DNA of 63,861 nt, counting the filler, from Perkinsus chesapeaki ATCC PRA-425 (lineage: Eukaryota > Protista > Perkinsozoa), in the NCBI GenBank assembly GCA_013115145.1. It is 8 parts of 8 records of this genome, joined end to end, with 100 filler letters (N's around TTAATTAATTAA, not from the genome) between each part and the next. Parts side by side here need not be neighbours in the genome. Positions count along the whole stretch, not along the records: positions 37,059 to 49,508 come from JAAPAO010000813.1; 7 more parts are not named here. One strand, 5' to 3'. Positions within the stretch are counted from its first letter, which is position 1, and every line of letters starts with the position of its first letter. The translations under genes and the position numbers were made by a program. The notes under the pieces were generated by a model. The model was not told the origin of the DNA. It saw only the letters and a program-made list of their open reading frames with translations, and searched no databases. Of this stretch, positions 37,203 through 42,359 are shown in pieces.

Positions 37203-40200
37203 ATGGCCGACATTAATCGTCTTCTCACTGCAGTAGAGAAGTCCCAATCTGAGATCGGGCGTAAGAGCAACATATGCTTACTTAACGTACAAACTTGTCG
37301 TTTTGCAGATGTAAAAGACCACCTTGAAGATGTGATAAAGCGAATGGACAATCTCAAGGACGACCTCGTCAAGAACGTCGAGTCGAGCCTTGCCATACAA
37401 AAAGAGAAATCGCACACCGTTACATTGAACTCTGGCATCGTCGAAACAGCCCTAGAAAAGATATCTCAGGACATGTCAAAGTCGGTTGAATTGCATACCA
37501 CAGTGCTATAGCCCCGGTGTGCTTAGGTTTAAGGCAATGGTTCGGGACGCAGCTGCTGCCCAAGAGGAAACACGGCAACAAGTACTTTGCTGTTGCGTTT
37601 AATAAGAGCGTAGTGGAAAACACCGTGTATTCAGAAAGCATCCTTAGTGAAGAAAAAGATAGGTCACGATGACAAATCAAGGTCGTTATTCGAGCGAGCT
37701 GGTGGCGACCGAAAGCTCGAGGCTGTTGTTGCCAACTTCTATGGTAGCAATAGTAAGCAGCCAGATGGTCACTTTAAGCACAGATAAGGCTGTGGCTGAG
37801 CCAAGAACCCGAGCGTATTTTGAGAAGAATACTCGCAAAGTGAAGCACTTGAAACAGAAGATACAGGCCTTCCTCGCTGCGTGAGATAAGGAAGGGCTCA
37901 TTAGTCTTAGTATAATAACCGTCGTTACTTATATTGATCAAATACCTTCTATTTCACATACAGTGTGCACTAGGCTACGCCCAGCTACTCATTTTCCATT
38001 GTGGGTCGCATTATCTACCACACGATTTGCGACAGGAAGGCATACATGTCCCAATGTTCATTAAACCAATTCTGGGACTCAGAATCGATTCCAGCATCGC
38101 ATTTTACGTGTAGAAAGCAGTTCTGGAATCAATTCTGAATTTCACAATTGGTTTCTTGAACGACCCCACAGGGGTGTACGGTATCAAAGGTCCCTTGATC
38201 GAAACAAGGAGCTGCTATTTTTATAACTTCTCCATTTAATTCAATTTCAGGATGCTCGGAGGCCCGTACACCTACGACACTACTACGCTGAAGCCTGCTC
38301 ACTATTACCTCAATGTCACAGACTTGCACTTTGATTGTGTCGTTGAATTATTCGTTCAAGCATTCAATGACGTAAGCCGCCCTTGGACAACAGGTTCGAG
38401 AAGACTTCTTTATAGGTTGGAGTGCACCCAGCTGTCACCGAAGAAGCGGGAAATCTCCTCGGCAAAGTAAGCCATCTTGTTCCATTTAGGTCACGACATG
38501 CTCCCTTCCAGACCCGTCGTCAAATAACCACTGGATATATAGTCAGAACCGAGCTTGCTCGGCGCAGCAACGAAGGTGGCCTGGACGCGCTTTACGAAAA
38601 ACTCATCGGCGAGCACGATGACTTGGTCCCGTTTATCGAGCGCTTAATGGACATATTCTCTTTGGACCAGAGGATTGTGTGGGCCTTCGAGGACAAAGAC
38701 ATCGAAGCGATGCAAGAAGGTCTTTTGTATTATCTCACCGACGTTCTCGGTGGTCCGCTAACTTACAAGGGCAAGAGCCTCTCCGCGATACATCGCTCCT
38801 TGGATCTAAACGACTACCATTTCGACGCTTTCCTAATGGACGTGGAAAAAGCCTTGTCAAGTCTAGGAGTTGACGACGACACTGTCGACGAGATTATCGT
38901 CATCCTCGAGCCACAGCGAGCGAGCGTCCTGTCTGGCCAAAAAAGGCGGGTTGAAACCGGCGCAAGAATTATTGACGGAAAGAACCTCTTGGAGCGCCTA
39001 GGAGGAGAAATGGCGGTCGAGGCAGTCGTAGACACCCTCTACGGCGCACTCATTCTGGACCCACGTGTCAAATTTTTCTTTCTGTTGGATGCTTCTCGTA
39101 TGAGGCAAATAAAAACGCGTATGACTCAGCTGTTGGTAGGGGCTTGTGGAGGGCCCAGATTGTACGATATAGCGAAGCTCAAGCCGGCTCATTTCCATCA
39201 CAACATCACCGACTATCATTTCGACGCCGTGTGCGAAAATCTGAGGGTCTCTTGTGAAGTAACGGACATACCGTCTGCTTTTATCGATGAGCTGTTGGAA
39301 ACCGTGGTCAAATTCCGACAGCAAATCACCAGTGGATGTAAGCGACCGTACACTAATAAGTTACCGCTTACCCCGCGATCGTGCCAGGCACAATTCGACT
39401 CGAAATTGCTCACCGAAAAACGGAGAGCGCTGGAACGGACAGTCTATATTCGCAGTTGGGAATGAAGGATGGCATTGTTGTCTTCGTCGATAAGCTTTTC
39501 AAGTATGCCAACTAACGCAACGATGCGCCGCAACAACATATCTCGGCTTTAGGCGGTTACACGCTGACCAGCGAATAGCGTACTTTTTCGCGGGGTCGAA
39601 GACTGAGGTTATTAAAGAGAAACTGAGTCTCTATTTGGACCAGATTTTCGGCGGAGTTGATGAGTAGGTCCATTCGTTGCTTACTCGAATTATCGACAAT
39701 GTCGATTCGACATAGACGTTCAAAATCTGATACTGACCTATCCCAACCCAATCCTGCCAGGTATACAGGTCGAGATATAGCTCAAGTTCACAGTCTGATC
39801 CAGATCAGTGATTTCCACTTCGATTGTTTTATACATGCATGTGCTCAATCTTTTGCGGAATCCGGCCTCGACGAAGATTCCACTGATGAGTGTAATGCAG
39901 CGTCGTGTGCTCTTTTTGCAATCGGTCTGGTCAGGTGTGGTGCTTCTGGAGGCAAACAGAGCGTCAGTTGTAAATTCTAATCGACGGGATCATGACGTGC
40001 GGAAAATGTTAGCCCTCGCAAACAAGAAGACCTTGTTTGAAATACTTGGTGGAGAGTCGGTAAGTCCAAGAATAACAAGGGTTTTGGAAAATGTCAGCTG
40101 TGGGGTTCGAACCCACGCGGATCTCTCCACCAGAACTTGAGTCTGGCGCCTTAGACCACTCGGCCAAACTGACTGATGGAATTTAGACTTCTTCGAGATC

Positions 40201-42359
40201 CTTAGTGCATAATTGCTTCTACTCAGTCCATTACTGGTGTTGTCGACAAAGTCTACGAGATGGCCGTTCTCGATAGTCGGCTCCGGTCCTTTTTCGAGAA
40301 AAACAAGGCGAAAATCCAGTCAATCAAGAAGAAGATGTCACAATACGTTTGTGGCCTGGTTGGTGGCCCTGTAAAGTACGATGAAGCTGACCTTCAACCG
40401 GCTCACTATGCCATAAACATCACAAACTACCACTTCGATTCTATACTCGAGCTATTCCGCATATGCTTGATCGGAGACAACGTCGAACGATCTGTTGTGC
40501 GCGACTTCATTAAAACTCTCCACCCCGTCAGACGATTGGTAACGACAGGATTCACGTTGCGTACTGAACTGGCTAAGCGAAATCTGGAACACGGACGAGA
40601 CCAGCTATTCCGAAAGCTTGGGGAGAGCGAGGGCATCCTGGCATTAATCGACAAGCTATTTGGCATTCTGTTCACCGACCCTAGAGTGAAAGACTTCTTC
40701 GCTGACAAAGAAGAAACAAAAGTAAAGGCTATAAAGAAGGGGATAACGACTGTGCTTGTAGAGACGTGGGGCGGCCCGAAAGCCTATCAAGGTGAGCCGT
40801 TGGAAGTTTATTATCACCTAGAGGCTTACTACTCAGGTCGAGAGATCGCGAATATCCATCGAGAAGTCGGACTAAACGACTATCATTTCGACGCATTCCT
40901 TGCTGATTTGCAGAAGGCTCTCATGGGCGGTGGGGCAGATGAGCAGCTCATCGATGAGGTTTGTCAATCGATATCCCGAAGTGAGCATGCATTGCCCGTA
41001 GGTTATCGTGACGGTGGAGCCCCTTCGGCAGGGTGTCCTCAGCCGTAAAGAAAACGATGCCACACAGCTTGCGCATAAAGACGGAGTGGTATAACCCCTT
41101 CGCGTGATTCAAAGGGATGTTTGACCCTTGCAGGCCCTTGTGGAACGTCTGGGTGGTGATCTCAACCTGGAGAGTATGGTGGAGAATCTATACGAAAAAT
41201 GCCAGGAAGATACGAGGATTAAGTAGGAAGCTTCCGTTTTGATGTGCTTCTGTGGTAGTAGTGCCTCCAATAAGGTACTTCTTCGACAAAGGGAAGTCCA
41301 AAGTTAGGCAAGTGAGAATGAAGATGTATCAGCTCCTCAGCGGCCTCTTCGGTGACCATTGCGGTTCACACTGTTGCCAATGGAACACCTGGTCTCAGGC
41401 GGACCTGTTCAGTATGACATTGAGAACCTGAAGCCTGCTCACTATGCGATGAACATCAAAGATTACCATTTCGATACGGTGCTCGAGCTAGCCCAGGAAG
41501 TGATGAGGTAAAACGACATTCGTCTGAGTAGCGGACTCTGCACCGCTAATGGTATCAGTTCAATGGACCTCAACGCTGATGCAATCGATGATGCCCTACA
41601 AATAATGAATATGGTCCGCTCGGGTATAACCACAGGATCCTCAGTAAGACATTCGTGCAACCCAAAACAGTAAACGTGCCCATCAGGTTCGAACAGAAAT
41701 GGCTCGGCGGCAGGGGCAAATTGACGGGCATGATTTCCTCTTCACTGCGCTAGGAGGCCCAGATGGTAGCCGTGTCCAGCGTGAAGGTGCGAGCGAGTGT
41801 GCATATGCTTCTGGTAGGCACTGACCACTTCGTGGTTCGGCTGTTTGAAGTTATCGGATTAGACAGGCGGCTTAATATGTTCTTCGATGGCGACAAGGTG
41901 AAGGCTATGAAGTCTGCGCTGGTAAGGAGTCACTGACAATATGCCCTTTGTTGGGGACTTGTGACCGTCGACTCCCTTGTTATCATAGGACTAGTTATTG
42001 CTCGACTTTCTCAAATTTACACGGCAATATTTTCGGCAATTTTTTTAATTTGACCGCGTTGATGATAGGTCGACTACATGACAATGGTATTTGGTGGCCC
42101 AGCAGGATATGTCGGTCGCCCACTAGAAGAGATCCATGCAGTCCTATCGATCAATGACTTCCACTTTGATTGCTTTCTCAATGACGCTCAAAAGGCTTTG
42201 CGTGACCTCGGAATGGAGCAAGACGTTGTGGATTACGTAAGTCTACCACCTGCCTGATCCCCCGTTACGCACTCCCTCTAGGTTCTGGTGACGATGGACT
42301 CCCAGCGCCCGAAGGTATTAAAGCACTTCTATGAGGAACGAGGAATTGTATATGCCTGA
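37203..42359 (+). CDS. Multi-domain globin: N-terminal coiled coil plus eight tandem group I truncated (2/2) haemoglobin domains
   Basis: About 20 exons splice in frame. Eight repeats each contain L.E/.LGG, a CD1 Phe (YF/FF), GG.+Y, a proximal His (KPAH/xIH) and (Y/F/L)HFD. Stop TGA at 42357-42359. Confidence 0.9.
40092..40173 (-). tRNA. tRNA-Leu(CAA), intact, antisense within a globin-gene intron
   Basis: GTCAGTT-TG-GCCGAGTGGTCTAAGGC-G-CCAGA-CTCAAGT-TCTGG-long variable arm-GTGGG-TTCGAAC-CCCAC-AGCTGAC-A. All stems pair, and TTTT follows. Confidence 0.95.

Follow-up and report, generated by a model that had tools for sequence, protein, structure and literature searches.

A predicted eight-domain group I truncated haemoglobin, encoded with an N-terminal helical module by one 23-exon gene

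Gene structure

We analyzed a gene located at positions 37203-42359 (plus strand) of a stretch of DNA of 63,861 nucleotides, hereafter the window (the whole stretch that was analyzed). Its predicted product is a chain of eight truncated haemoglobin (TrHb) domains placed behind an N-terminal helical module. The piece of the window carrying the gene (37059-49508) is eukaryotic, with ~48% G+C and reading frames lying in short broken blocks. Splicing of 23 exons, separated by 22 introns, gave a coding sequence of 3534 bases and 1177 codons with no internal stop, for a protein of 1177 amino acids (aa). Its ATG lies at 37203 and its TGA at 42357-42359. The start and the end are those given for this gene in an initial annotation of the DNA. 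The peptides that the annotation had quoted were also found in the product: SLFERAGGDRKLEAVVANFY from ~37680, and a C-terminus ending in EERGIVYA before the stop.

Exons 1 to 6 were placed at 37203-37260, 37309-37480, 37527-37581, 37635-37743, 37784-37880 and 38251-38371, and exons 7 to 12 at 38416-38466, 38512-39337, 39388-39502, 39553-39663, 39761-39891 and 39935-40059. They are followed by exons 13 to 18 (40227-40791, 40837-40958, 41002-41088, 41134-41222, 41275-41351 and 41399-41507) and by exons 19 to 23 (41559-41643, 41687-41765, 41818-41921, 42069-42236 and 42282-42359), all on the plus strand. The 22 introns all start with GT and end with AG. Eighteen of them measure 40-53 nucleotides (nt), the other four being 370, 97, 167 and 147 nt long. 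The 370-nt intron (37881-38250), located in domain 1, is an outlier of size among these mostly 40-53 nt introns, and an Rfam search of the long introns, this one included, returned nothing beyond a tRNA-Leu.

Exon borders were set using the splice consensus, the spacing of paralogous domains and the alignment with orthologues. At each junction within the globin domains, the joined sequence had the exact residue spacing of the paralogous domains, and with this spacing restored the eight domains align nearly gap-free. For intron 2, a placement at 37485-37533 was dropped because 37481-37526 restores the orthologue motif K-F-K-x-M-(I/V); for intron 3, a 32-nt version (37582-37613) was dropped as well, 37582-37634 fitting the 40-53 nt size class. 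At 41086/41089, two in-frame donors lie one codon apart and GTATAA was chosen, and a 45-nt in-frame intron (40792-40836) is found inside domain 6. The encoded protein has no recognisable targeting domain and may be cytosolic, as judged by eye rather than with a predictor.

Globin domains

The domains were counted with a hidden Markov model (HMM) made from 373 truncated-haemoglobin segments, all from proteins outside this family, with the 140-aa protein P0143 as seed. On the spliced protein, this independent model found exactly eight full-length domains (independent E-values, i-E, of 1e-30 to 1e-35). Domains 1-4 were found at residues 105-228, 240-368, 377-495 and 502-635, and domains 5-8 at residues 643-764, 774-908, 912-1037 and 1039-1175. 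The initial annotation had claimed eight group I 2/2 globin domains in one chain; these eight matches, together with collinear orthologues, bear it out. The name "octameric" that it had given to the protein should read "eight-domain". It had also suggested a comparison with the Pfam family Bac_globin (PF01152), which matched the longer exon pieces: two stretches in 38416-39462 (E 4e-25), two stretches in 40206-41045 (1.5e-16), and 42069-42254 (4e-7). The matches were weak or absent for the lone short exons of domains 1, 4 and 7, because these pieces span only 30-75 aa.

The domains alternate between two subtypes in the order (A-B)x4, odd domains being of type A and even domains of type B, with short and conserved linkers. 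Identity reached 36-42% within the A domains and 32-39% within the B domains, versus 22-32% between A and B. Key haem-pocket residues were placed through an alignment to the Tetrahymena trHb. Domain 1 (37662..38532), broken by four introns including the 370-nt one, carries Tyr B10, Leu E7, Lys E10 and Ile E11, with its F8 His at aa 181 (38300-38302). The other A domains are domain 3 (38977..39333; Tyr B10, Ile E7, Arg E10, Met E11; F8 His at aa 448, 39190-39192), domain 5 (40015..40547; Tyr B10, Ile E7, Lys E10, Met E11; F8 His at aa 717, 40404-40406) and domain 7 (41077..41692; Tyr B10, Val E7, Lys E10, Met E11; F8 His at aa 985, 41440-41442). Among the B domains, domain 2 (38566..38952) has Met B10, Met E7 and Leu E11, with F8 His at aa 315 (38791-38793), and domain 4 (39402..39993) has Phe B10, Ile E7 and Leu E11, with F8 His at aa 582 (39789-39791). 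Domain 6 (40575..41067) has Phe B10, Ile E7 and Ile E11, with F8 His at aa 853 (40857-40859), and domain 8 (41696..42350) has Phe B10, Met E7 and Leu E11, with F8 His at aa 1119 (42135-42137). All eight lie on the plus strand.

Every one of the best sequence matches in the PDB was a group I TrHb, from Tetrahymena (3AQ5-9), M. tuberculosis (HbN), cyanobacteria (GlbN), Chlamydomonas (THB1 and LI637) and Paramecium. We modelled domains 2-3 only, which lie on one uninterrupted exon, using AlphaFold2. The mean predicted local distance difference test score (pLDDT) of this model was 83.9, and disorder was confined to the linkers. Compared with known structures using Foldseek, the model gave target-normalised template-modelling (TM) scores of 0.92 to Tetrahymena trHb (3AQ5/3AQ7), 0.91 to Paramecium Hb (1DLW) and 0.81-0.85 to HbN, and group II structures scored far below those of group I. 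Domains 2-3 are therefore predicted, from this model, to adopt the 2-on-2 TrHbN fold. Residue G8 is C/A/A/C/S/A/T/C along the chain, so that Trp G8, the mark of groups II and III, is absent. On their sequences, the domains are assigned to group I truncated haemoglobins (TrHbN, PF01152).

A predicted single gene and its intronic tRNA

A tRNA-Leu(CAA) gene lies in antisense within the locus (40092-40173, minus strand; ARAGORN, and Rfam RF00005 with 57 bits), and its position raises the question of whether two or more smaller globin genes, split for example at this tRNA, or a decaying pseudogene array, occupy the locus. Two further points speak for such a division: gene calls in this family can mislead, as a 2375-aa P. 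olseni model, probably a wrong fusion, illustrates, and the exon borders of our gene model are predicted from the sequence. A search of sequencing runs for the locus returned DNA runs only, plus two tiny, possibly-RNA runs under the same species label that did not contain the sampled words. The junctions 37480/37527 and 37581/37635 are the least certain of the model.

The tRNA-Leu sits within the 167-nt phase-0 intron 40060-40226 (GTAAGT...CTCAG), which separates the A and B helices of domain 5. The flanking exons join as ...GGES|SITGVV..., and the helices are then spaced as in domains 1, 3 and 7. Since the tRNA is intronic and domain 5 is continuous across it, the locus is not divided into two genes there, and a split at the tRNA-Leu was rejected. 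The whole chain is also open, with canonical splice sites. Its residues 1-1176 are collinear with the two halves, each in turn, of the P. olseni protein KAF4665176.1 (45-46% identity by BLAST, 47% by global alignment). Similarly, the metagenomic orthologue P0006 (1120 aa) is collinear with the chain end to end at 39-40% identity. P0010-P0013 are 30-32% identical; P0011 and P0012 aligned from near residue 1, and P0010 and P0013 from ~residue 100, the P0010 alignment starting at the first globin domain and ending close to the C-terminus. Register-shifted alignments to the orthologues gave much lower scores. P0010 (1225 aa) and P0006 are uninterrupted open reading frames (ORFs) on intron-less, eukaryote-like metagenome contigs, so that their eight-domain chains are independent of any splicing model. 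In addition, each orthologue has one N-terminal module per eight domains, and nonsynonymous divergence (dN) from a relative is far below the saturated synonymous divergence (dS). With these points against it, division or decay of the locus appears very improbable.

The eight TrHb units are thus predicted to be encoded in one chain. An upstream tandem copy, as in P. olseni, was looked for in the 144 nt that separate the ATG from the end of the piece, and no similarity to a globin C-terminus was found there. As a whole, the locus is probably a single gene for an N-terminal helical module followed by eight tandem group I domains.

As a separate observation, the corresponding intron position of L001, a genomic contig of a relative retrieved from Logan, carries the 3' part of the tRNA-Leu with 100% identity (28 nt covered, plus flank; ~1713-1741 of L001), in a surrounding intron that has diverged. 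No tRNA was found in the introns of the corresponding P. olseni locus (L002).

Haem pockets

All eight domains contain Phe CD1, the G-helix H-F(-D) motif and the proximal His at F8, in line with the F8 His and HFD that the initial annotation had attributed to each of them. Moreover, both F8 His of the A-B di-domain were invariant across 37 homologous di-domains. The EF hinge contains GG in every domain (GGP in seven, GGV in domain 4). In the AB hinge, GG is limited to domains 1, 3, 5, 7 and 8; domains 2, 4 and 6 carry IG/GM/GE.

On the distal side of the A domains, Tyr B10 is accompanied by hydrophobic residues at E7 (L/I/I/V), by Lys/Arg/Lys/Lys in position E10 and by Ile or Met in position E11. 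In the B domains, B10 is Met/Phe/Phe/Phe, E7 is Met or Ile and E11 is Leu or Ile, which leaves a wholly apolar distal pocket. As the B domains of P. olseni retain Tyr B10 and Gln E11, the apolar B pocket would be derived in the lineage of the window protein; it is partly common to P0006.

Distal residues differed even from the close relative P0001, in which B10 is Ile in domain 2 (Met in the window protein) and Phe in domain 3 (Tyr in the window protein). In the metagenomic, intron-less orthologues P0010 and P0013, domains 5 and 6 have very long branches and lack both the F8 His and the GGP hinge, indicating that the eight domains are not all haem-competent in every lineage. The distal drift and the loss of F8 His suggest that constraint is weaker on single pockets than on the fold or the array. 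Both would suit a protein acting chiefly as a haem reservoir or in haem sequestration, or as a sensor of redox state or ligands that is coupled to partners by its N-terminal helix, with several domains catalytically inert. As the window protein and those of P. olseni keep all eight F8 His and Phe CD1, and the protein has no sensor output domain, we regard this role as improbable.

N-terminal module

The N-terminal module covers ~104-105 aa (residues 1-104) and is encoded by four exons (37203..37661, plus strand). The N-terminal helical segment of the initial annotation is real and conserved in the orthologues, where the module is present once per eight-domain unit in every case. In it, helix 1 (aa 2-43) is followed by a variable loop, then by helix 2, and finally by a basic linker with a conserved DDKS end. 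A gap-free alignment with orthologues, including the conserved K-F-K-x-M motif, backs the 48-nt intron 1 and the chosen intron 2. Pfam has no family matching this module.

Helix 1 contains six heptads, with I4, V11, I18, L25, M32 and L39 in position a (87% conserved hydrophobic) and L7, S14, V21, V28 and L35 in position d. Across orthologues, its hydrophobic periodicity had a maximum at 3.5 residues. For the orthologue P0002 (residues 1-245, 13-sequence alignment), AlphaFold2 predicted helices at 2-41 and 56-83 (pLDDT ~66-76), with a disordered loop of variable composition between them and domain 1 after them. Because of the 3.5-residue period and the clean a/d register, helix 1 can reasonably be read as a coiled coil. 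What the initial annotation called a coiled coil is thus a heptad signature in a predicted helix, and helix 1 may either pair chains or fold back on helix 2.

Relatives, array history and selection

The nearest named relatives of the protein are from Perkinsus olseni, P. chesapeaki and P. marinus, and the "putative parasite" of the initial annotation is a reasonable description given that they are parasites. Orthologues were found in P. olseni (KAF4665176.1, 2375 aa; KAF4723286.1; KAF4754373.1) and P. chesapeaki (KAF4651942.1), all annotated as "hypothetical". KAF4651942.1 (613 aa), an incomplete model, corresponds to residues 1-616 of the window protein and stops inside a globin domain. The P. 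chesapeaki and P. olseni proteins share only 50% identity with each other, and 45-47% with the window protein. Judging from such sequence comparisons, the protein evolves fast, and the gene belongs to a Perkinsus-like alveolate.

A search for the same domain count elsewhere, also proposed in the initial annotation, found eight-domain units in P. olseni and in metagenomic eukaryotes. We also built a maximum-likelihood tree for six units (48 domains in total), in which the domains grouped by position, with 9 label changes (minimum 7, shuffled mean 34.6) and the pairings D1-D5, D3-D7, D2-D6 and D4-D8. This positional clustering suggests that the array grew from A-B to A-B-A'-B' and then to eight domains before the sampled lineages split.

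The contig L001 is collinear with 38509-40119 at 70% nucleotide identity. For the large exon, dN was 0.146 and synonymous sites were saturated, a state in which an NG86 dN/dS is not computable. At the sequence level, the gene appears to be under purifying selection.

At the locus of KAF4665176.1 (L002, JABANN010000101.1), we found an in-frame stop at 8757-8759, after a natural, window-like C-terminus of the first unit. The second unit has its own Met-Ala-Asp-Ile start ~135 nt 3' of that stop, and the gene caller bridged the two with an intron. The 16-domain, 2375-aa model is therefore probably a fusion of two tandem eight-domain genes, which would correct a public annotation. Other P. olseni models (1386-1987 aa) have the same tandem pattern.

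Intron calls are absent from the contigs of P0010 and P0006 (L004, L005 and L006), which are very gene-dense, neighbouring genes lying only tens of bases apart. The neighbours of P0010 and P0006 include MCM, mitochondrial-carrier and WD40 genes, the source being a compact-genome eukaryote.

Neighbouring features

On the same strand as the globin gene, 244 nt 3' of its stop, lies a tRNA-Ala(AGC) (42603-42675, plus strand; ARAGORN, and Rfam with 55 bits). Farther along, two ORF fragments in 44452-45593 (minus strand) match the Pfam family HVSL (PF09749, USB1-type 2H phosphoesterase; E 4e-6 and 0.02), which suggests an intron-split USB1-like gene. A fragment of the hAT-family C-terminal dimerisation domain (PF05699, E 5e-6) was found at 46735-46896 (minus strand), and a Cys/His-containing ORF with no Pfam match at 46445-46666 (minus strand). 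From their sequences, the two may be the remnant of a degraded hAT transposon.

Discussion

Each of the eight domains would bind one haem b through its F8 His, giving eight haems per chain. The A domains would be the reactive sites for oxygen (O2) and nitric oxide (NO) chemistry, with Tyr B10 stabilising bound O2. By analogy, their Lys E10 may coordinate the resting iron, as in the Lys-His hexacoordinate resting state of Chlamydomonas THB1 (PMC7082302). As the polar distal residues of the B domains were lost in this species, these domains would bind ligands weakly or provide passive capacity for O2, NO or haem. The heptads of helix 1 could pair chains into dimers or larger particles.

Perkinsus relatives are intracellular parasites of molluscs. 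This way of life, together with the NO/O2 chemistry suggested by most of the microbial group I TrHbs that have been tested (PMC7082302; PMC4106858), led us to rank NO dioxygenation first among the possible functions, ahead of O2 buffering and then of haem storage or sensing. By analogy, our best functional guess would be a high-capacity NO-dioxygenase or O2-buffering haemoprotein; NO detoxification as its main role is proposed tentatively, at somewhat less than even chances. The high-capacity NO/O2 sink or haem store, oligomerised by a coiled coil, that the initial annotation had inferred would be plausible, although the even-numbered domains complicate it.

Several observations weigh against this picture of the protein. 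Tyr B10 is absent from four of the eight domains (2, 4, 6 and 8), and Gln is absent at both E7 and E11 in all of them, E11 being I/L/M/L/M/I/M/L. With no Gln E11, and Tyr B10 in half of the domains only, the distal pockets differ from those of the characterised NO-dioxygenating TrHbN, in which both residues stabilise bound O2, and these missing residues are, on the sequence, the main argument against a simple HbN-like mechanism. Tyr B10 and a polar Gln at E7/E11 are typical of the family and not obligatory, so their loss weakens an HbN-like working more than it does membership. Furthermore, no reductase partner was evident near the gene. For the module, helix 2 has no clear heptad periodicity, and the confidence of the model, computed for P0002 and not for the window protein, is moderate.

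Alternatively, the main task of the eight-haem protein, in micro-oxic host tissue or sediment, could be to store or buffer O2 or to carry it by facilitated diffusion, rather than to detoxify NO. Transport or storage of O2 is the role of the characterised covalent multi-domain globins, those of Artemia, Daphnia and Ascaris. In the even domains, the apolar pockets would favour fast, reversible binding of low affinity, and Tyr B10 of the odd domains a higher affinity, so that two affinity classes per chain, as predicted from these residues, would suit buffering. However, the chemistry suggested for the group I TrHbs tested in microbes (PMC7082302; PMC4106858) is mostly that of NO and O2, and the Lys/Arg E10 of the odd domains may point to a hexacoordinate iron, an unusual state for a simple carrier. 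We consider O2 storage possible but rather unlikely as the main role, and keep NO dioxygenation as the first candidate.

A more speculative proposal, which we hold to be doubtful, is that the (A-B)x4 order is itself functional. In a particle of at least 16 haems held together by the heptad helix, apolar B domains would collect or channel O2 and NO, and perhaps relay electrons, to the A domains with Tyr B10 and Lys E10. Such a particle, if real, would be the intracellular protist counterpart of the giant haemoglobins of invertebrates. We know of no description of a division of labour between paired globin domains in 2/2 haemoglobins.

Perkinsus-type parasites cause major losses of oysters and clams, and live in host haemocytes amid reactive oxygen and nitrogen species. 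A conserved eight-haem globin, multi-copy in P. olseni, is an obvious candidate, as yet unstudied, for handling NO or a shortage of O2; our literature search on Perkinsus globins found nothing relevant. The family also offers a natural experiment, with two subtypes in fixed alternation since before the lineages diverged, one of which has lost its polar distal residues here and kept them in P. olseni.

Comparison with known systems

The domains of the window protein resemble single-domain group I TrHbs (3AQ5, HbN 1IDR, 1DLW, THB1 4XDI and the GlbN of Synechocystis and Synechococcus) in their predicted 2-on-2 fold, in F8 His and Phe CD1 and in the Gly-Gly hinges. Tyr B10 of the odd domains is also common to these proteins, and Lys E10 to THB1. 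By contrast, E11 is Met, Ile or Leu where single-domain TrHbs have Gln, and the even domains are devoid of any polar distal residue. Single-domain proteins are also made of ~116-136 residues with one haem, whereas the window protein places eight domains behind a helical module.

A 2017 study by Hade et al. (IUBMB Life 69:479) reportedly concerns multidomain truncated hemoglobins made of tandem repeats of globin units. Several 2/2Hb domains per polypeptide are on record, Chlamydomonas THB5 having four (PMC7082302). The window protein shares tandem units with the multidomain TrHbs of this literature, and adds eight domains in fixed (A-B)x4 order together with a heptad N-terminus. The initial annotation knew of no characterised protein with this architecture, which holds; it does not extend to sequence databases, where eight-domain orthologues occur in P. 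olseni and metagenomes and a 12-domain protein in Lacrimia.

This protein of the diplonemid Lacrimia lanifica (1882 aa, 12 Bac_globin stretches) resembles the window protein in carrying many group I TrHb domains per chain. Long poly-TrHb proteins are also found in the dinoflagellate Biecheleria cincta (1461 aa) and in Volvox and Astrephomene (640-1040 aa). The Lacrimia, Biecheleria and volvocine proteins are 24-30% identical to the window protein, differ from it in length and array, and the N-terminal module was not found in them. Their arrays are probably independent or much older.

Covalent 3-on-3 globins of invertebrates include the nine-domain Hb of Artemia and the two-domain Hbs of Daphnia and Ascaris, which are extracellular O2 carriers, and in Ascaris Hb a terminal zipper-like segment drives assembly. 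These polymeric globins share with the window protein the multiplication of haem sites by tandem duplication. They belong to another lineage, have a 3/3 fold and are related to it at the superfamily level only.

The closest counterparts are the units of P. olseni, which also consist of an N-terminal MA(D/S)(I/V) module followed by eight alternating TrHb domains, with positional orthology domain by domain. Unlike the window protein, they are tandemly duplicated, and their even domains have Tyr B10 and Gln E11 (Phe/Met and Leu/Ile, respectively, in the window protein). Overall, these sequence comparisons indicate a conserved architecture, already present in public databases as Perkinsus "hypothetical proteins" and in several metagenomic eukaryotes, and not a new kind of protein. 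The features worth following are its fixed (A-B)x4 order, its heptad N-terminus and its lineage-specific apolar B pockets.

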